A DNA stretch of 64,000 nt from Vitrella brassicaformis CCMP3155. Lineage: Eukaryota; Protista; Chromerida. The DNA lies in the NCBI GenBank assembly GCA_001179505.1, contig CDMY01000366.1, forward strand, positions 124,001 through 188,000, in the 5' to 3' direction. Shown here one piece after another: positions 8,571 to 32,400 of the stretch (position 1 is the first letter of the stretch; every line of letters begins with the position of its first letter). The position numbers and the translations under genes are program-made. The notes beneath the pieces are model-generated. The model saw only the letters and a list, made by a program, of their open reading frames with translations, had not been told where the DNA came from and made no database searches.

Positions 8571-8610
8571 CGGTCTGACGTCACGTCGGGTCCGACGTGA
8601 CGTCAGACCG
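8571..8610. repeat. Perfect 19-bp inverted repeat with 2-nt spacer, containing two TGACGTCA octamers
   Basis: cggtctgacgtcacgtcgg-gt-ccgacgtgacgtcagaccg; the arms at 8571-8589 and 8592-8610 are exact reverse complements. Confidence 0.95.
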
Positions 8611-19385: not shown

Positions 19386-22300
19386 TCACTCTTCCATTGT
19401 CACATCTTTGAATGGCTCGTCAGGGGTGTGACCATCGCTGTTTACGGCCACGGCAGCTGGGGGCACTGTGGCGGTCTCTGCCGCCGCGGCAGCATCTCCC
19501 TCCTTACGTGCTGCGGGCTCTGGCTCCTCGGCGGGCTGCTGCTGCTCCTCTTGGGCGGGGAGCGCCCAGGTGTAGTTGGCGGCTTGACGGGGGTGCTGAT
19601 GCATATTAAAGAAGGCGTTGATGTAGCTCTGCACAGATACACACATACGTGTACGGAGTTCTCTGGCAGGGGTGGGTCAGTGATTGCGTATTACCGTGCC
19701 TTTGTAGTGGATGGGGCCGTACTCGAGAACCTCGGTGAAGAAGTAGGAAGTCTGCGGTTGACACACAAACAACATACATACCGCCGACGGACGCACACCA
19801 GGACGGATGTGTGTATGGATGTCTCGTGCTGGCTGTCTGGCCGTCTGTGTGGACCGACCGTCACAGTGCTGAGGACAGCTCCTGGGACATCCATCCATCC
19901 ACCCAGCCACCCACCCACGACACAAACAAGAGGAGACACAGCCACAGACGGAAGACAGACATATGATGCTTGCTGTAGGGACATGCATGTACATGTTCTC
20001 GGGCACTCATTCTTCACTCACCTGCGGGCCATCCCAGCAGATCTCCGTCGACCTTGTCCCCGGTCACGTCGTTGACGAGGTTATCGCGGAAGGTCATGGC
20101 GGGACCACTGTTGTCAAAACCATACGCTGCAGAGGGACACATGTACACAGATAGCCACAAGCACGCGGTGTTCTCCCACCCATCCGTTGTCCACCGACCG
20201 ACCTTGCAGCAAGCTCGAGACGAACATGGCCTGATCGAAGGAGTGAACAAAACATCAGCCTCACGTGTGGTGTGTGGGGAGGGGGCAGGTGTTCGTGTAC
20301 CTTGAAGCATGCAAAGTAGTTGAATGGATTGAGCTTCATGGACTGGTTGTTCTCCGGGTTGACCCACATATGGCCGTCCCTCAGCACCAGGTTGCACATC
20401 TTGGGCGCCCTCTCCTTGAAGTGGGGGAAGTTGTTTTCGAGGTCGTCCTGCCCTGTCTCAACCGCTGGCAGGATATCGGGTTTGGAGAAATCGGCCACTC
20501 CGGCGGCCTCCATTTCTCCCGCCAGGTAGCCTATCACGTTGCCCGTCTTCTGTATGTTGAAACGGACATTTCGTGCTATCTGACAACCACACACATCACA
20601 TGCCACTCACACAACTTGTGCTCGCAGGGCACGGAGGTTCGCTTTGCTTTGCTTGCCGTGATTTTCTCTTTGATGTCTCGTGGTATGGGGTATGCGATGC
20701 CGCCGTTGGATGGCAGGGTGTTTTGCATCAGGAACGTGTCGATGAGGGTCTTGCACTCGCGGTTTGTTCTCTTCACCTCATCGGGCGCAAGATCCGACCT
20801 CACCGCCCCCACCAGCTGACCGACCATATCAGAAAAAGGAAGTTTGCACGTGGCTACAATCAGAATGTGTCTCACACTGTCCTTCTGTCTGATTGCGCGT
20901 GTGTGTGTGTCTCCATCCATCCATCCATGTATGCGTGCATGCCTTGGTGCAGGGGATATCTTCCGCGCTTGGAATCCTGCGAGGTAGGTGTGTGTCACAC
21001 ACGGGAAATCCTTGATTTTTCCTTAAATTGCTCCGACTACCTGATCTTGTAGTCGTCGGACTGTAGGTCGGTAACATCGAAGCCCAGCCGCTTGCAGGCA
21101 CTAGAGGTCCCTTCCTGGTAGTGTCTCCACAGAACTCCTGCAGCCCGATGAGCTCGTTGTCGTTGGCGTCTACCACCTTGTAGCGGCCGCCCGACTTCTC
21201 GAAGGTGACGTCCCCGGCTGCACACGGCTGCTCCCAATCTGCACGCGAATACACACACACACACGCACACACACACACACACACAATGCAGGGAGGCATC
21301 CACGTCTATCGCTTGGCCTACTTTCGTTGAAGCATGGGTGTACGCACACTTCCTTGTTCGGCCCCTGTCGGAATTTCATGTTCGAACAGGCCACCTTGAT
21401 CACAATGGCACGCGCACGGTTGATGCTGCGAGACAGCCAGCGACACAGACAGCCAAGAGTGCAGCCATGGATCGATTCAAGACACACACACAGCACACGG
21501 CGCCACACTGGTGACTGACTGACTGACTGACCCACCCGAGGTTCATGAAGGATGTGGCGAAGATTGGAATGTCCTCTCTCAGGTAGGGCACCATGGCGTT
21601 CCGTCGATCGACGCCGCGGTTGACGTATCCTGTGTCCAGCAGACCTTGGTGGATGGACGAGCGCTGGCCTGTGTAGGGGAACGCTATCTGCGCACTGGCA
21701 CCACCGATCTCCATCATACCCACCTGCGCACCGCATCCACGCAGAGACACGCAGGCACAATGAATGGACAGTGAGCCAGCGACTGGCTGACCGACCGACC
21801 GACCGGCTGGAGATTGGCGGGCATGGTGATCTTGCGGTCATTTTCGACGAACGGAGATGACTCGAAGAGCCAGTCGCTGAAGGCCGGCAGGGGTGAGTGT
21901 GTCTTCTTGCTGCCTTTCAGCCCGCTCATGATCTCCTTGGCGGCGAGCTTCCACCCGGTCCCGGCGCTGTTCGCGGGGCTGTACTTGTATTGGCAGGGGG
22001 AGGTCGAGCCGCGACAGGCCCACTTGAGCAGCTCGCCGATGAACAGGTTGACGGCAAGGAACGCATACACTGCCTCCTGGCAGGTACACAGACACAGAGA
22101 TACTGCCGCTGTCTGTCTCTAAGTCAATCACTTGTTTACCTCTGATCCAGACACCCGACGGCCAGTGGACCTGAACAGGAAGCAAAGCAAAACAAAGCTC
22201 TTTGACAATGAGTGAGTCCATCCATCGGGCTGACTGACTGACTGACGGACTCGGTGCAGAAAAGGTTGATGCCCTTCAGGCTTGCATATTTGTTGATGAC

Positions 22301-23357
22301 GCTTCGCGCGGCCGAGAAGATCCGCTTGGATATGTCAGAGGGCAGATCACGGACACCTGCACTCAGTCATGCACTCGATCATTCGCTCGTTGACGGCAGT
22401 GGAGACAGACACACGAAGAGAGACAGACAGAGCGAGAGGCTTGTGACTGAGTGGCTGACCTGCTGTTGCGAAGATCATGACAGGAATGTCTGTGAATGTT
22501 GGAATCGGCCTCTCAACAGGAAGTATCGGCTGCACCCACCGACCCCACCCACTCGTGTATCAGACCACATATGTATGCATGTATGAATGGACATGTATGC
22601 ATCTTGTGTAATCCATACCTTGCTCACGACCTTTTCCATAAGGTCAACGATTTTGGTAAGGAAGCTGTCGAGGTAGTCCTGCAGCACCTTCTCGTCCCTT
22701 TCGGTGTGCCACACTGCCCCGTCAGCGGATACCAACGGTTTCTCGGCCAGATCGGCGTTCGTCTCAAAAAACTTGCGGATCCCCTGCGGTGTCCTGATGT
22801 CCTCCCCGGGGTCGATCGGCTCCAGAGTGTCCCACAGAACTTTGCGGCCCTCGAAATCCGCACCTGCAGGCAACAACCAGTCGAGCCGATTTGGACGACA
22901 TGCAGGCAGCGAGAGACACAAATGTACGCGAGTACATAGTAACGTATAATGCCGATCATGCAGCGCACAACAAGTAAGTACCTGAGATGAGATGTTGTGT
23001 GTTGGTGCATGTCTCGGACAGCGCCTTGAAGAAGAATGCCGCCGTCTTGCTGGAACCGGCGTCGAGCACCACGAAGTAGTGGCGGGCAATGTGGCAGCCG
23101 TGACGGGAACCGACGTGCTGATAGCTATAAGAGGGATCCCGATCGGAATATATACTCGGAACATATACTTGATTGGAACGCAGGGCCATCCCGGAAGGAG
23201 AAAGCGTTGGTGCCTCTGCGTTGGCAAATTGTGCTTCTGCTGCTTCGGGGGGCGGCGTATTGATGCTGAAAGCGACTGCAGATGAGTCGGGGGAGGAGAG
23301 AGCTACCACCGCAAGCAGCACAGACGGAAAGGCTCTCTGCTGCTTCATCATGGCCAT
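19386..23357 (-). CDS. Secreted GDA1/CD39 nucleoside triphosphate diphosphohydrolase, Toxoplasma NTPase-like
   Basis: Signal peptide plus apyrase conserved regions: VVLDAGSSKT, IPVMIFATAGVRD, VSGSEEAVYAFLAVN, MEIGGASAQI, TSFMNLG and DLLGWPAG. About 13 exons. Confidence 0.9.
22171..22250 (-). mobile_element. Introner-like intron, copy 1 (in the NTPase gene)
   Basis: 80-nt GT-AG intron made of GTCC (duplicating the first 4 nt of the next exon) plus a 76-nt core that is 72/76 identical to the intron core at 24961-25040. Confidence 0.6.
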
Positions 23358-23841
23358 TGCAGTGACAGGTGACACGGCCGTCTCGATTCCCGCGGTTTCA
23401 CGTAAGTCTGCCGGCAGGGCCGTCCATCAGGCCGTCACACCAGCGGCAGCGACACTCGCTGTTGTCTGAGAGACGGCGGGCTGCTCGCATGCTCGTGGGG
23501 GCCGCGATCGATTTTGAAATCGATAGTGGCCCAGAAGTGTCAGCACCCGACACAGCCCCACGGATCATGCCGCCGCGAGATGATGACCTTGCTTTACGGA
23601 GAGAAAGGGCGAGATGGAAGGATATGTGTGTGGGCAAGGCTGAAAAGTCCTGGCGGGGTTCAAGCTATACAGAGGCGTCGACGGAACGCAACACATATAC
23701 TACAGGTACACCCACTTTGGCACACATGAACTGTACAGATCGGAGACAATTGTCGTCTCTACAATCGAAAAACGAGATCATACATCACCAGCACAGCTAA
23801 GCTTCTCACAGTGCTGATCCATTCAGTGCCTCCATGGTCAC

Positions 23842-25204
23842 TTAGACCGGCCTGATGGCGCTCTTCCGTAGTAGTTGCCTGTAGTAGTCTCGTGTAGTAG
23901 TTGGCAGTGGCGCCAAGAGGGAGTCGAGGGCAGGACATATCCGCAGCGCCGACACGATGCACCTGCGCACATACACACGCAGAGAGGCTGTCGACCGCTG
24001 GGTGTGTTGTGTTGGAAGCTGGCTGTGCACTTGCATACATGTCTGTGTGGTGTTGTAGGGTGACGATGAGTTTCCGCCGGTGGACGGGGATGATCACCGC
24101 CTCATAAAGCTGAACCAACACTACACGCACCGCACAGCAACAACACACCACATGCTTCCCTCCCTCCTGCGTTCCGTTTGGTCCCTGAAAGTACTGTACT
24201 GCAAACTTACTGTCTTTGTCCACCGTATCCATCGGCGCATGCGATAACCTCTGCATTGATTGACACATCGCATATATCATGTGATGTGTCTGTCAATCGA
24301 TTGAGATCATATGATGTGTCTGTCAATCGATTGAGTGCCGACTGGCTGACCTTGTCTCCAAAGGGCAGGCTCATGACAAAGAAGAGGGGCAGGGTCCACA
24401 CATTGAGAAAAAACCACCACAAAAACCACAACTGAACAACAGCAGGCGAAGAAGAACAGCCCTTGGTATGGACAGTCGATCTTTTTCGCCATTGTCCATC
24501 CTGCTGGCCTACCGATGTGCGATATCGAAAGCCGAACACGAAGGTGAGAGCCTTGGCCACGGATAATACTGAGAGCGCATGCAAGCAGCAAGGAATAACA
24601 CCCACTGCGTCTGCTGCGCTGCGGCAGGTAGGTAGCTCTGGTGCTTACATGTCACTTTGCCAACGAACAAATTCACGGGATCACGCACTATGGGCTTGGG
24701 GTACCGGTGAATGCCGTCGAGAAAACCCCAGACATTGGTCACCAAGGCAAGCAGGATGTAGAAGCCACTCGTGAACCCCAACAGCCACATTGTCACCTCC
24801 ACCGCACACAGGACCTGACGGCAGGCAGCAACCATCAAGGCATTGCAAGGAATGGGGAGAGTCGGCTTGGTGTCTTCGCGTTCGGCTGCGTACCCACACG
24901 AGGTAGGTGAGCACCCGCTTGATGTCATCGATGTCGGCCTTGTCGAGAAAACAGCCATACCTGAACAGGAAGCAAAGCAAAACAAAGCTCTTTGACAATG
25001 AGTCCATCCATCCATCGGGCTGACTGCCTGACTGACTGACAGCCATACCAATACAAACCACCAGCTGAACAGGCAAAGACACGTACACCCACATGCATCA
25101 ACTTCATCTGCTATCTTTTGTTGCTCACCGATGAGCCCGACGATGACGAATGCGCCCAGCAGATAAGAGAAGGCGGCACTCAGCGCCCACCAAATCGCGC
25201 TCAT
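23842..25204 (-). CDS. TEX261: TEX261/Svp26 (Erv26)-like multi-pass ER-Golgi cargo adaptor
   Basis: Spliced protein MSAIWWALSAAFSYLLGAFVIVGLIAGGLYWYGCFLDKADIDDIKRVLTYLVW...ALVTNVWGFLDGIHRYP...WFFLNVWTLPLFFVMSLPFGDK resembles the TEX261/Svp26 pattern as I recall it. Confidence 0.6.
24276..24335. repeat. Intronic 30-bp tandem repeat, 2 copies
   Basis: atcat(g/a)tgatgtgtctgtcaatcgattgag occurs twice with one mismatch. Confidence 0.9.
24961..25048 (-). mobile_element. Introner-like intron, copy 2 (in the TEX261-like gene)
   Basis: 88-nt GT-AG intron made of GTATGGCT (duplicating the first 8 nt of the next exon) plus an 80-nt core nearly identical to 22171-22246. This donor keeps the AGGLYWYGCFLD frame. 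Confidence 0.6.
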
Positions 25205-25490
25205 TGCAGACCTTCGATCACGTACTCCTTGCCTCTCGAAACGCGCAGCTTGATTCGACTCTGGGCGGCAAATCAGCTGCGTAGATGCCGGAGGAGGAAG
25301 CACCTCTTCGCAGCTTTGTCAAACGCGAGCTCGATTCGAAGCTAAGCTCGCAATGGAGCGGACTCCTTCTTACGGTGGACGCGAGGTGCAGCAACATCTC
25401 ATTTGAGTGATCTTGTTGCCGATCGGACAAGTCCCCGCTGCTTGCTCGCCCATAAGGCCCGTGCCCTCATTCCTTCTTCTGGTTGGCGCC

Positions 25491-28400
25491 ATGAATGAGT
25501 ATTACTACATGTACACGAAGCTCCGCAAGGAGTTCGGGCGGCACTGCTATTTTGAGGACAGCGACCCCAAGATGCTCGGCGTGGTCGATGCACAGCCCGG
25601 CCTCAGAGACGGGTTCGTGCCGCAGAACCCACGACACTTCGTCGCCGACAACATACCACAATTCTCGGGTACGCAGGATTGCATAGCCTGGCCCCGCAGC
25701 TGGGGCATGCACTCATCTGCTTGTCTCTGTCTGCCCGTCTGTCCATCTTTCGTCCGCAGAGCATGCCGTCAACACGGAGCGAGTGAGCGTTGCAAGCAAG
25801 GGCATGAAACACGTCGAGGGGGGCTGGCCGAAGGAGGTGGATGCCACGGAGCACCAGGAGACGTCCAAGTGGCGCAAGCGGCTGGACAAGGACCCCGGAT
25901 TCGCCACGGCCGTCAAGCATTTGTGTGCAGACGCCACCAAGTACCTCGAGCAGAACAACACCATCGACATTTTTGAGGAGTACTTTGAGGGCGAGACGGT
26001 GCAGCACAGCACCGAGAACCTCTCCACCAAGACACTCATGCTCTTCAAGTCAGCCAGCTAGCCACCCTTACACATCTATGCACCTCTTGGATCGTGTCTC
26101 TCGTCCGTCCGTCCGTCCGTCCGCCCGTCCATCTGTCTGTCTGTCTGTCTCTGTGTGTCTCGTTTGTGAAGGGATGAGGTAGAGGGTGTTCGTCGCACAG
26201 CGACCAAGATCTGCTGGCACCCCGAGGGCCCGTCCAAGCTGGCGGCAGCCTACTCGATCATGCGGTTCCAGAAGATCCCCGACCCGATGCCCTCCATGGC
26301 CTTCGTGTGGGACACGTCCAACCCCAACCTGCCGATCGCCGAGCTGGCATCCCCATCGCCCGTCGTGACGCTCCAGTACAACCAGAAGAACACCGATGTC
26401 ATCGTTGGCGGATGCTACAACGGGCTCATCCGTAAGAAAGGAAGAAACAGAAAGACAGACAGCCGGCATCTGTCTGCGCTATTGATGTGCGCGGATTGAC
26501 AGAGTTGTGGGATGTGCGCAAGGGTTCTCAGCCGGTGGAGTCTTCGGCCATCGAGACATCGCATTACGACCCCGTATACGAGATATGCTGGTCGGTCGGT
26601 CACCTCACCTCGATAGGAATGCACATCACATCCATTCCATGCAGCACAGACAGACGCACATGTCACATGCATGCATGTGTCTCCATCCATCCATCCATCC
26701 ATCTTCCCATCCATGTATTGATTTGATTGTCAGGCTGCAGAGCAAGACCAACAGCGAGTGTGTCTCCGTCAGCACCGATGGCAGGTCGGTTTAGTCACTG
26801 AGTTTTCAATATATGTTTCACTCGCTTCCATGCAAATATATGTCGCAATCATGTATGTTTTTCTGATCCATCGTGTCAATGGCCGGCCACCAGAGTGTTG
26901 TGGTGGGATGTCCGCAACATGGCTGAGCCCATCGACACGTGTGAACTCACCGACGCAAACAAGTAAGAAAGGAAGAAAGGAGGAAACAAAGAAAGTCACC
27001 ACACACAGGCAGTAAGCTCCACCATGCACAAACAACAAAGTTCGTTCTCCGGGTGAACTCAGGGATGATCCCAAGTTGCTGGGCGGTGTCTCACTCGAAT
27101 GGGCGCTGGAGGCAGGGGTACGTACGCTTGAGACAGAAACTGGATGGGGCCGTCGTGTGATCGATCCCCGGGTTATCGAAACGTATGTGCCTGCCTTTGT
27201 TCCCTTTTGTTCTTCCAGCCCGGCAAGTTTCTGATAGGCACTGAGCAGGGAGTGGTCCTCTCGCTGAACAAGAAACCCAAGAAGGGTACAAACAATACGA
27301 AAGCGATAGACGCATTTGTGTTCTCGACGTGTCGTGTCGAGTATAACGTTTCTGTGGATATGTGTGTATGGTGGTCAGCTGTTGAGATCCAGACCCGTTT
27401 CGGGATGGAGAGCGGCAGACACTACGGCCCCATCTACGCCGTCAAGGTATCCATCCATTCGCTTCGCGCAGACAGACAGATATCTTCCTTGCCTTGCCTT
27501 GCATGTCTTGATGCCGACCTCTCTGTGTGCGCATGGCATCAATGACAGCGCAACCCGGCGCAGCCCAAGTTCTTCCTCACTGTTGGCGATTGGTGCACAA
27601 AGGTAAGTCAGGTGCCTCAACACACACACGTCCACGTGCACACACACGGGGCACAGAAAGGGTGTGTGTGGGGCGCCAGATATGGAATGAGGACCAGAAG
27701 ACCCCAATCATGTCGACACAATACCACTCCTCCTCACTGATGACCGGTCAGCCAGCCAGCCAGACAGAGAGAGAGAGACAGGATGACTCTTCCAGCCATC
27801 CAACTGCGCCTTGTCATTCCTCTCTGCAGGCCAGTGGAGCCCCACACGTCCCGGGGTCTTCCTGGTAAGGACAGGATTAATGACTTTAACACAGTTCGGC
27901 CTTTGCTGCACATGTGGGTGGGTCTTTTGCTGGCCTGGCCCCTTGCCGGCGTAATCAGGTTGGTCGTCAGGACGGTTATTTGGACTTCTGGGACTTCTTC
28001 TACAGACAAAACGAAATCGCATTCCAACACAAGGTGTGCACACATGCGCGCAGCAACGTGCAATGCTAGCCCCCTGTTGGATGGTATCAGGTTGGTGAGG
28101 CGGCTTTGTGGTCGATTGCCATCCAGAACCAAGGGCAGCTGGTGGCCGTGGGCGACACCGACGGTGCGGTGACGCTGCTGGAGCTGTGCGAGCCCCTCGT
28201 CGTGCCAACATCCGCTGAGAAGACCGTCATACAACAGGCAAGCCGAGAGACATCGAACAATCGTGCGCTTGACTTAACATCTGTCTGTTGTCCGCATGTA
28301 TGTATTTGTGCACATATATATCATACTGCAGATGTTTGACCGTGAGTCGAGAAGGGAGAAGAACCTCGAGACAGCAAAGAAACAGGCCGAGGGTCAGCTA

Positions 28401-28905
28401 CCAGAACACAACTGATCACATCACACCACACACGACAGCATACTCGCAGAAGAAAGAATGATATACACTTTCACACCCCAGGCAAGAAGGCCCAGCGAGA
28501 GGGCAGCCCCTCGCCAAGCGGCCCACCGCCACGCAAAGCTGAGGTCTGTGGTCCCACACACAGCCAGCAAGACAAGCCGCGCGATATCCCCGGCTCGTGT
28601 GTCTCTCTTGTGTGTCTCAGGAGGCAGCTCAGTTTGAAGAAAAGTTCTTCACCGAAGTCGGCATCTCGCCAGCGGCTGGCGGTGGTGCTGGTGCTGCGGC
28701 ACCCGTCATGACGAACGGGGAGCCCTCACACGAGCAGGAGAACGGCGTCCCGGATGCAGCAGAAGCCGTGGTCAACGGGGTGCCAACTGAGAACAGAGTG
28801 CCGGAGGCCGAGAATGGTGTGGCAGAGAATGGGCCGGTGGCGGACGGAGAGCCTGCTGTGGATGGGGAGGGGGAAGGGGAGGCCAGACGGCCCAGCAATA
28901 ACTAA
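25491..28905 (+). CDS. DNAI2: Axonemal outer-arm dynein intermediate chain 2 (IC2/ODA6), WD40
   Basis: MNEYYYMYTKLRKEFGR, HVEGGWPKEVD, QNNTIDIFEEYF, ICWHPEG, VWDTSNPN, GGCYNGL, SHYDPVY, FLIGTEQG and HYGPIY, followed by an acidic tail. Confidence 0.95.
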
Positions 28906-29457
28906 TGATCATTGATCGATGGAACGGGTACGTACATGTGTTCGTGTGTATGCCGGTGTGTTCGTATGTATGCGGTGCGTGCGTGGGTGATGGATTCACT
29001 TCACCCTCCCTGCCCTGCCCTGCCCTGCATGTACGTACGGCGGATCGATCGGCTCGTGTCTGTTTCGTTTCAAGTCACTCACTAATAATCCATAGATATG
29101 TGTCTCACAGTGTGGATCGGATCCCAAGACAGACAGACAAGACCCACCCACTGTCAACACCCCAGCACCGTACCATACGGACATAAAAGATACCGACAAG
29201 GACAGGCGGTCCCGAGTGCAGCGAGGGAGGCATGGCATACACACAGAGACATTTCTATACACACACACACACATGGATGCACGCACAGATCAAGAGATTT
29301 CCACTACCAAACACTTGTGAGTCCAGTCAATGGCAAGGCACACATATACACGAATTAGGTTTAGATACATACATGTATACACACACACATACATGCACAC
29401 GCATGCAGCGCACACCCATAGAAAACCCGAACGTCTCCCTTCCCTCATGCGGCCAAT

Positions 29458-32400
29458 CTATCGACCATTCGTGCCAGTCGTCTTGGTCTCCTCAATTGCC
29501 GACAGCAGCTGCTGCGTCAGGTCCACCTGCTCCTGCGCATTGTTCCTGGAAGCCGTCTCTGTCGACGTCTCGTTGTCTGGAACGAAGAAGTATGTGACGT
29601 TGCCGATGTTGTAGACAAATGTGCCGTTGGTTTCGAAAAGCTGGCCCTCCAGCGCCTCGTACTCGGGCAGCGACACGAGTGCGGCCCGGCCGGCCGTCGT
29701 GTTGACCCCCAACCCCACCGGCGGCAGGGGCGAGCCCGTGTAGGCCTCGGGCACATAGGGCGCCTCGTCGGGCGGCAGAAAGGCCAATGTCATGTTCTCA
29801 TCGTAGGCCGGCGGCAGACGCGACACGGGGGGCGGTGGGGGGAGGGTGTGAGTGGCGTTGTTGTCCTGCAGCTGTCTGTAGCCGTATGTGTGAGGGTTGT
29901 AAGCGCCATACGCTGCGGAGTAATCGAAGTAGGCCGCTCCACCTGAACAAGAGAGACAGGCAGACAGGAAGACACGGTGCACTGGGGCAATCCATCCATC
30001 CATCCATCCATTTGTGTGTTTGCGTAGGTGGGTACAGTACATGTGTATGCGCCGTCAATGCAGACGCCCGAGCAGCAGTCGGAGTTGTAGTAGCAGTAGG
30101 TGCCGCCAGTGACGCACGCGTTGGCGTAGTAGTCTCGGAGATGGTAATACGGATAATGATAGTAGGCCAGGTAGGGATACCTACACACACATAATGTACC
30201 CCATACATACCAACAGCACAACCCACCTTCAACACACACACCGACGCAGGCGAGACAGACAGACACCACACTCCCGACCCGACCCGACTCACCACCAGCC
30301 GCCCACAGAGACGCTGACGGACCAGCCAACAGCCACCCGCACAGGTACAGCGACAGGGTACCGGAACGCAGATCCGTAGACGAACTTCGGGTAGCCTACA
30401 AATGGCGGGCGGACCACGGGAGCAATATATGGCGTGCGGTACAGTGGAGGCACGAAGGGTGCCCTCCTCGGGAAGTAGCGGACGGCGGGGCGGGCGTTCC
30501 ACAGCGGGTCTCGGCCGATCCCGATGTTGATGCTGATGCCCACCTGGATGGGACGTTCCCGCTGACGTAAGGCCTCGTCAGCTGCACACGTGCACACACC
30601 ACACCACACCACACCACGCCACACAAGTGCACACAGACATGTCTTATATGATTCGCCTTGTCGTCTTGTCCGTACGGAATATGTCGTCCTTCCATCCACC
30701 CGGAGGCCCTCCAGGCCTTCGCAGTCCGCCGCCTCTTGGGAGGCTGATCCCAATGTCTCGCACTGTGTCTAGCGGCCACTTGTTGTCGTTGTCCGGCAGC
30801 CATCGAGGGCGGTCGAATGGCCGCCCGTCGTCATCGTCGCCGATCAGCCAGCCGGGGAGGCCACCCCCCGGTCTGTCACCGTCATTGTCCTCGTCTCCCA
30901 CTCCAGGCAGAACGTCGGGAAGGTCATCGCTGGTGCACGGAGAGAGATCTTGTCTTCGTGTGTGGCGGCTGTCTTCACCTTGTCCTCCTCTTACCCAGGT
31001 CTTTCGTCGCCATCCTGGTCTCCGGGAAGCCGAGGAACTATCGGCTCCTGGTCATCGTCAGGCCTGGTCGCGACACACGTCTATGTGGGCATGTCCGAAC
31101 GGCGTCCGTCACTCAATCGTGAACTCACCGTGGGATAATTGGTGTGTCGTCGTCGCCAGGCTGTTGAGGATTTATCGGCTGCAGACCTTCGTCATCTTCA
31201 TCGTCCCCTGCTCCAGGGAGAATGCCGGGATTCTCGTCGCTGCGGACACAGAGCATCATCCGAGCAGCCTGTGGCCGCCCGACCTTGCCATTTGCTTACC
31301 CTGGTTGTTCGTCAACATCGTCATCGTCCCGAGGTGTGATGTCAGGTCGAGGCAGGATCGGTCGGCGGTCCTCGTCTTCATCGTCACCAGGCGTGAGAGC
31401 AGGGCTGTCGCTGGAGGGCACAACATGCACACTTGGGGACCACCAGCAAAGAAGTGCAAAGCACTCACCCGGGATTCTCATTGGGGTCGTCATCGCCCGG
31501 TGTCAGTCCCGGAAAGGGAAAAATCGGCCGACGATTCCTCTCGTCGCCGTCTTCATCGCCTGGGCCATCGACAGGCGGGCCATTTCCCCCGGGCGGGAGC
31601 CTGCACACAGCAGCAAGGACACACCATTGCGTGTGCTCGCTACTGCGCGGTGTCTAGCAAGATCACCTGGGTCTGTCGCTGGCGTCGTCATCGCCAGGAG
31701 TGACGACTGGCTGGTCTGGGAGGATCTGACGATCGTCGTCGCTCGGACTGCTGCTGCATCGACGGCGAGTGGAGACAGCAGTGGCGCTAACGCACGTGCA
31801 TCTATCGTCCCTTACGGTGGCGCGCCGGGCAAGATGGGCTGCTGACTGTCATCGCCAACCGGGCGAGAGATCGGGCTACTACGTTCATACGAACGTTCAC
31901 ACACCACACCCACACAGATGCTCATGTGTCTTTGTCTTGGCACGTTCCTGCTGTGTGTTTGTGTGGGCAGGGCACCTGGGGGGGCTCCTTGGAAATCCCG
32001 GAATGCCAATTACGCGAGGGGGGTCATCCCGTGGGGGTGCGACAGGGCTGATGGGTCGGTCAGGGAGGGTGGGGCTGCATAGCGTAGCATAGCAATGGCG
32101 CCAAGTCAAACAGCGTGTGTTCCAATTCAAGGGCACTCCCTCCCACAGTCACCCAGCAGCAAACCATCTAGCTCAGCTCACCGGTCATCGCCCTCATCAC
32201 CTCCACCGAATCCAGGGAACCTCGGCCTCCCGCTGCCGCCGCCTGAAAAGCATCGGGGACAAAGCAACCCATATACACCTGATATATATACATCTGCACC
32301 GGCTGGCAATGACCTGGAAAAGTTGGCCGTCTTCCTCCGTTGCCAGGTCTGGGAAAACCCCCATCCCTGCCACCGAACTGGCCCACAGCGGCTGCAGACG

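Follow-up and report, generated by a model that had tools for sequence, protein, structure and literature searches.

Vitrella brassicaformis is a chromerid alga, a very intron-dense relative of the apicomplexan parasites. The present analysis concerns a 64-kb window of the genome of its strain CCMP3155 (contig C366, positions 124001-188000; all coordinates below are those of the window), in which two unrelated neighbouring genes of the minus strand, an NTPase gene (P0002, downstream) and a gene of the Erv26/TEX261 type (P0001, upstream), carry two introns of nearly the same sequence, hereafter the twin introns, 2,790 bases apart (Table 1). The NTPase matches the Pfam family GDA1_CD39 with 82.4 bits, and its closest relatives of solved structure are the NTPases of Toxoplasma and Neospora; the other protein matches Erv26 (the Svp26/TEX261 family) with 22.5 bits, just above the cut-off of 22.2. 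Searches with either protein against its own genome indicate that both genes are single-copy, and in the genes checked here introns occur at a mean density of one per 90-140 coding bases. It will be argued that the intron of the Erv26/TEX261-like gene (the TEX261-like intron) is probably a recent gain, its body being a copy of the intron next door.

Table 1. Position of the twin introns, of their host genes and of associated features in the 64-kb window (nt, nucleotides; aa, amino acids; cDNA, complementary DNA)
Feature	Position	Strand	Remarks
NTPase host gene (P0002), coding region	19389..23189	minus	annotated model, 787 aa, 18 exons
Erv26/TEX261-like host gene (P0001), coding region	23842..25204	minus	234 aa, 9 exons; cDNA contigs
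NTPase intron	22171..22250	minus	80 nt, GT-AG; annotated model P0002; probable source copy
TEX261-like intron	24961-25048	minus	88 nt; junction in cDNA contigs
Insert in the Erv26/TEX261-like gene	24961..25040	minus	80 nt, same extent as the NTPase intron; contains the likely branch region, pyrimidine tract and AG acceptor
Identical acceptor-side block	22171..22213 = 24961-25003	minus	43 nt; unique to these two sites of the genome
Upstream copy of the 8-nt target duplication GTATGGCT	25041..25048	minus	its GT is the donor used (cDNA)
Downstream copy of GTATGGCT	24953..24960	minus	opens exon 3 (8 nt; codons for W-Y-G)
GTCC opening the 31-nt downstream NTPase exon	22167..22170	minus	the same 4 nt also open the intron (22247-22250); statistically marginal
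Micro-exon	25049..25064	minus	16 nt; separates the new intron from the older one at 25065-25128; cDNA-verified
Introns with tetranucleotide arrays in register with the donor, among others	21724-21803 (-), 26591-26733 (+), 20127-20202 (-), 27747-27829 (+), 26049-26171 (+)		checked introns

The initial annotation of this DNA had placed the twin introns correctly and had recognised the sequence they share, including the exact identity of their final 43 nt. Its figure of 72/76 for a gapped core is here replaced by a longer match without gaps, which pairs the whole 80-nt NTPase intron with the TEX261-like intron less its first 8 nt and has 75 of the 80 positions identical (MAFFT, BLAST and direct comparison). 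Two of the five differences are single substitutions within a (GTCA)5 array, and the remaining three form one block, CTC versus TGG, where a (GGAT)n run meets a (CTCA)n run. The exons flanking the twin introns show no similarity to each other, the homology stopping at the intron borders except for two ambiguous bases (GT). A 40-nt pattern from the acceptor side has exactly two matches in the window, and none of 100 shuffles contained any match. The 5' third of both introns is made of (GTCA)n and (GGAT)n microsatellite, a type common in the Vitrella genome, so that only the 3' two thirds are diagnostic.

Repeats of this sort recur in other introns of the region. In about 10 of the 41 introns checked, the first bases form a tetranucleotide array, (GTCA)n, (GTCG)n or (GCCA)n, that keeps the register of the donor and offers a possible GT donor in every unit, and intron bodies are mostly microsatellite patchworks whose building blocks are also present in the locus L058 on contig C285. 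The older intron lying directly upstream in the Erv26-like gene shares its last 9 nt, CCTGTTCAG, with the twin introns (25065-25073 versus 24961-24969); this common end is probably the acceptor consensus plus chance.

The TEX261-like intron differs from the sequence it shares with the NTPase intron by an addition at its start, namely the 8 nt GTATGGCT, which lie outside the 80-nt homology and are identical to the 8 nt that open the next exon. Because the GT at the start of the insert and the G at its end recur in the bases adjoining the duplicated segment, the exact direct repeat at this site amounts to 11 nt rather than 8 (24951-24961 and 25039-25049, with a spacing of 88 nt). As controls, 39 introns of the window were tabulated, 23 verified by cDNA contigs and 16 taken from the annotated NTPase model. 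Among them the repeat between intron start and next exon start reaches 2 nt at most, and the boundary repeat as a whole 6 nt at most, the longer ones arising from the CAG|GT consensus; the boundary repeat of the TEX261-like intron (10 + 1 = 11 nt) is therefore a clear outlier.

The NTPase intron is a less clear-cut case (4 + 0). It opens with GTCC, as does the exon that follows, and a 4-nt match on the intron-start side is found in none of the 39 controls (about 1% under a simple model), whereas a total boundary repeat of at least 4 nt is found in five of them. Roughly a quarter of the control introns open with arrays of the (GTCA)n or (GTCG)n type, and GTCC can accordingly be read as a variant first unit of such an array; the repeat may be due to chance or may be a genuine 4-nt duplication. 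Both repeats had been pointed out in the initial annotation, with lengths of 4 and 8 nt; both are real, the second in its extended form.

Four RNA-derived contigs from four samples (L035-L038) join position 25049 to position 24960, splicing thus pairing the outer GT with the insert's AG, and they contain the uninterrupted 705-nt reading frame of the Erv26/TEX261-like gene. The donor used sits 8 nt upstream of the GT of the copied intron, and splicing removes the insert together with one copy of the repeat exactly, restoring the coding sequence GLYW|YG. The earlier proposal that the donor stems from a duplication of the target, the acceptor from the shared core, and that splicing re-establishes the target thus holds in full for the Erv26/TEX261-like gene, but it is less secure for the NTPase gene, GTCC being marginal there and perhaps a variant GTCA unit. 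Likewise, the transcript evidence called for at both junctions is at hand for the former in four contigs, while no transcript contig was retrieved for the latter, either with an exact-junction pattern (metagenome and transcriptome contigs) or through an exact-protein look-up of P0002. Removal of the NTPase intron nevertheless yields an alignment with NTPase 2 of T. gondii (4a5b) that extends without gaps from ACR2 (the ATAG motif) to ACR3 (GSEE...Y), and the Vitrella annotation models were built using RNA-seq intron hints (PMC4501334).

The closeness of the two copies and their common strand might suggest gene conversion between two old, unrelated introns, or else an artefact of the assembly. 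Either is highly improbable. Conversion requires prior homology, and would neither stop exactly at the intron borders nor make a target duplication; an artefact is at odds with copies that differ at five positions and by the 8-nt repeat, and with flanks that are unique and, on the TEX261-like side, confirmed by cDNA. A look-up of the genomic read-through open reading frame, meant as independent confirmation of the assembly, found nothing on record.

Classical intron transposition deserves attention because the copy spans the source intron from its GT to its AG in the sense direction, and because the adjacent gene in which it sits is transcribed. The excised NTPase intron would have been reverse-spliced into the messenger RNA of the Erv26/TEX261-like gene, reverse transcription and recombination would have followed, and the boundary repeat would be a coincidence. 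Reverse splicing, however, predicts precise insertion with no target duplication (PMC3443670), whereas 8-11 nt are duplicated here; a chance repeat of that length has a probability of about 1e-5 or less and lies far outside the 39 controls, and splicing does not take the GT of the insert itself as donor. I consider this pathway hardly credible for the Vitrella introns.

The number of copies bears on whether the twin introns belong to a family. They had been taken, in the initial annotation, as members of a recent intron-generating family of the kind known as introners, and this view is not supported. A search with the core over the whole assembly (72,700,666 bases, or 72.7 Mb, in 1,064 contigs), by BLAST of the 80-nt intron and with patterns of 22, 23 and 29 nt allowing up to 3 mismatches, found two copies only, and the three patterns gave zero control matches. 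This search and the tabulation of boundary repeats had both been suggested as a check; they leave two copies, one 11-nt repeat that stands apart from the controls and one 4-nt repeat that is marginal. For comparison, introner families have been delimited by at least four similar introns in unrelated genes (Gozashti et al. 2022, PMC9860276), and in the same study Vitrella_brassicaformis_CCMP3155 is scored as marine = 1 and introner = 0 (Supplementary Table 4). Transposon hallmarks are likewise missing, as there are no terminal inverted repeats (TIRs) at the ends of the twin-intron sequence, and the candidate duplications, of 4 and 8-11 nt, have no fixed length. What the TEX261-like copy does have in common with introners is its precise excision, with one splice site from the insert and the other from the duplicated target.

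Other candidates were considered and set aside. A 17-nt match on contig C285, examined as a third copy, is of microsatellite type and not homologous, and some 39 matches in the genome to a 16-nt 5' motif are generic intron repeats of the (GGAT)n type. A host intron for a small nucleolar RNA or a microRNA was rejected; the predicted RNA fold of either intron is no better than that of shuffles (z 0.1 and 0.4), and neither intron has a match in Rfam. A hAT-like miniature inverted-repeat transposable element would fit the 8-bp duplication, but not the lack of TIRs or the presence of only 2 copies. Tandem genomic duplication of an AGGT-containing exon segment was rejected as well, for the body of the intron matches the intron of the neighbour and not exon sequence of the Erv26/TEX261-like gene. 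Finally, BLAST of the 64-kb window against itself and against the genome disclosed no other unique, intron-sized duplicate of high identity, the remaining matches being microsatellites, a 279-nt repeat and diverged exons.

A more modest version of the introner view traces both introns to the insertion of a small introner-like element that was short-lived, had a (GTCA)n ... CAG layout and generated duplications of 4 and 8 nt; only two copies of it would survive or have ever been made. The first bases of the next exon do recur at the opening of both introns, and a 4-nt match there is unseen at the intron start of the controls; 4 and 8 nt both fall within the 4-12-bp range of repeats left by staggered breaks, and each copy adjoins a very short exon, of 31 or 16 nt. 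Against these points, two copies 2.8 kb apart are below the family minimum cited above, TIRs are absent, the ungapped alignment over 80 of 80 positions allows GTCC to be a GTCA unit with one substitution, and total boundary repeats of 4 nt or more are not exceptional among the controls. On balance, such an element is a possible but rather unlikely source of the pair.

The explanation that I regard as probable, with some reserve, is that the TEX261-like intron was gained recently in a single local event, in which a staggered break was repaired with a copy of the neighbouring NTPase intron. A break of this type would have occurred in a coding exon of the Erv26/TEX261-like gene, and the filler inserted at it would have been a copy of the 80-nt NTPase intron situated 2.8 kb downstream on the same strand. 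Fill-in of the stagger would have duplicated the 8 nt of the target, GTATGGCT, or as many as 11 nt, given that the edge bases G and GT are common to insert and target. By chance, the duplicated segment would have started with GT, whereby its upstream copy could become the splice donor, while the copied intron would have contributed the branch region, the pyrimidine tract and the AG. With the acceptor-side signals ready-made and a duplication starting with GT, the new intron may have been functional at once: use of the outer GT with the insert's AG excises the insert and one copy of the repeat and brings back the original reading frame. The footprint of intron gain at staggered breaks, as described in Daphnia, consists of repeats of 4-12 bp that copy the end of the adjacent exon (PMC4202315; review PMC3443670); the TEX261-like intron has a repeat of 11 nt, and no control intron among the 39 goes beyond 6. 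The initial annotation had also preferred local copying by repair to a transposon with a target-site duplication of fixed length. Repair indeed fits better, yet the argument then drawn from unequal duplications loses force, as the insert matches the NTPase intron over its whole 80 nt.

Two kinds of filler can be envisaged. The excised NTPase intron might have been captured as cDNA or RNA, which is favoured by the fact that the copy is co-extensive with the source intron and starts, as far as the 4-nt period of the array allows this to be judged, at its first base. A possible source of reverse transcriptase would be the Class I (retro) elements reported in the Vitrella genome (PMC4501334). Alternatively, DNA synthesis at the break might have been templated on the neighbour 2.8 kb away, switching at the microhomologies of 1-3 nt (G, GT) seen at both junctions, in which case selection would have retained only an insert whose 3' end is exactly AG; the short distance and the common orientation speak for this second possibility.

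Along the same line, whole excised introns, as RNA or cDNA, could have been re-inserted at nearby staggered breaks more than once, with variable duplications of 4 and 8-11 nt providing the donor, which would be a route absent from the usual catalogue of intron-gain mechanisms. Both twin introns would then be products, and the process would be ongoing in Vitrella at a low rate; I deem this unlikely.

As to the direction of copying, I infer that the simplest history is one event, by which an old NTPase intron was copied into the Erv26/TEX261-like gene, although the 4-nt GTCC repeat of the NTPase intron makes a history in two steps, or a tiny abortive element, possible. The reverse, in which the TEX261-like intron is the older and the NTPase gene received its 3' 76 nt together with a duplication of 4 nt, is conceivable inasmuch as selection fixes only the 3' end of an insert, so that a copy might start inside the (GTCA)n array. 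It is nonetheless very unlikely, because the strongest footprint of insertion, the 11-nt repeat, is in the TEX261-like intron, and a further insertion from a source no longer in the genome would be needed to account for it.

Several observations weigh against a single repair event that copied an old NTPase intron. The NTPase intron, too, opens with a 4-nt copy of the downstream exon, a feature of none of the 39 controls, and may itself be an insertion. The (GTCA)n array leaves the 5' limit of the copied segment uncertain by its 4-nt periodicity, and the evidence for splicing of the NTPase intron consists of the annotated model and homology. Moreover, word-index searches with P0001 and P0002 returned only the two proteins themselves, and hence no orthologue that would bear on polarity or on prior absence of the intron; nor did a relative emerge from a metagenome locus search, or a paralogue from the own-genome protein searches with P0001 and P0002. 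The other GDA1/CD39 genes of the Vitrella genome are very distant from P0002. One of them, on contig C894, lacks an intron at the position of the twin intron, and its ACR3 intron close by lies 5 nt away from that of the NTPase gene, which suggests that intron positions are too fluid for polarity to be read from them. The same paralogue (L059, G000:C894, 3440-3850) has canonical ACR2 and ACR3 motifs, and its introns are close to those of the NTPase gene without coinciding with them.

Some further features of the region were recorded. The RNA-derived contig L035 corresponds to positions 23601-29595 of the window and spans two spliced genes placed head to head, a WD40 beta-propeller gene (plus strand) and the Erv26-like gene (minus strand); either the 5' ends of the two genes overlap, or divergent transcripts were merged by the assembler. 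The annotated NTPase model may start too late, for an in-frame stretch upstream of it (23190-23375) resembles a signal peptide, and a 12-nt exon (20876-20887, minus strand) is present solely in this model. GC-AG introns occur at 28238-28331 (plus strand), where L035 provides cDNA verification, and, according to the annotated NTPase model only, at 20889-20942 and 20580-20656 (both minus strand). Comparison of the window with itself by BLAST also revealed a near-perfect palindrome (95%) of 40 nt at 8571-8610.

There are few new spliceosomal introns for which source and product are both unambiguously legible in the sequence; a review of 2012 counted 14 events of intron gain of the transposition type and 5 of the break-repair type (PMC3443670). 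Should relatives of Vitrella turn out to have the empty site, the pair described here would make a textbook-clean case of how a ready-made acceptor and a lucky GT in the duplication give an instantly functional intron, and it would also serve as a test case for RNA-derived versus DNA-templated filler. It is a single event, and the picture of intron evolution is unchanged by it.

Among known systems, the neo-introns formed at staggered breaks in Daphnia pulex (Li et al. 2009; PMC4202315) resemble the Vitrella case in being one-off insertions that belong to no family, with filler DNA turned into an intron. Here, by contrast, the filler can be recognised as an entire spliceosomal intron already present in the gene next door, and its acceptor signals come ready-made. 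Intron transposition, as reported in Oikopleura and Mycosphaerella (PMC3443670, Table 1), shares with it a near-identical, full-length sense copy of an intron from an unrelated gene, but canonical transposition by reverse splicing entails no duplication of the target, whereas in Vitrella 8-11 nt are duplicated and the donor lies in the duplication. The introners of Micromonas, Aureococcus and many aquatic protists (PMC9860276) likewise take one splice site from the insertion and the other from the target duplication, with the target restored; they differ in numbering tens to thousands of copies against 2, and in Vitrella there are neither TIRs nor dispersal across the genome. To sum up, the Vitrella pair is an event of a known kind, one that joins a mark of intron transposition, the full-length copy, to a mark of break-repair gain and of introners, the target duplication that gives the donor.

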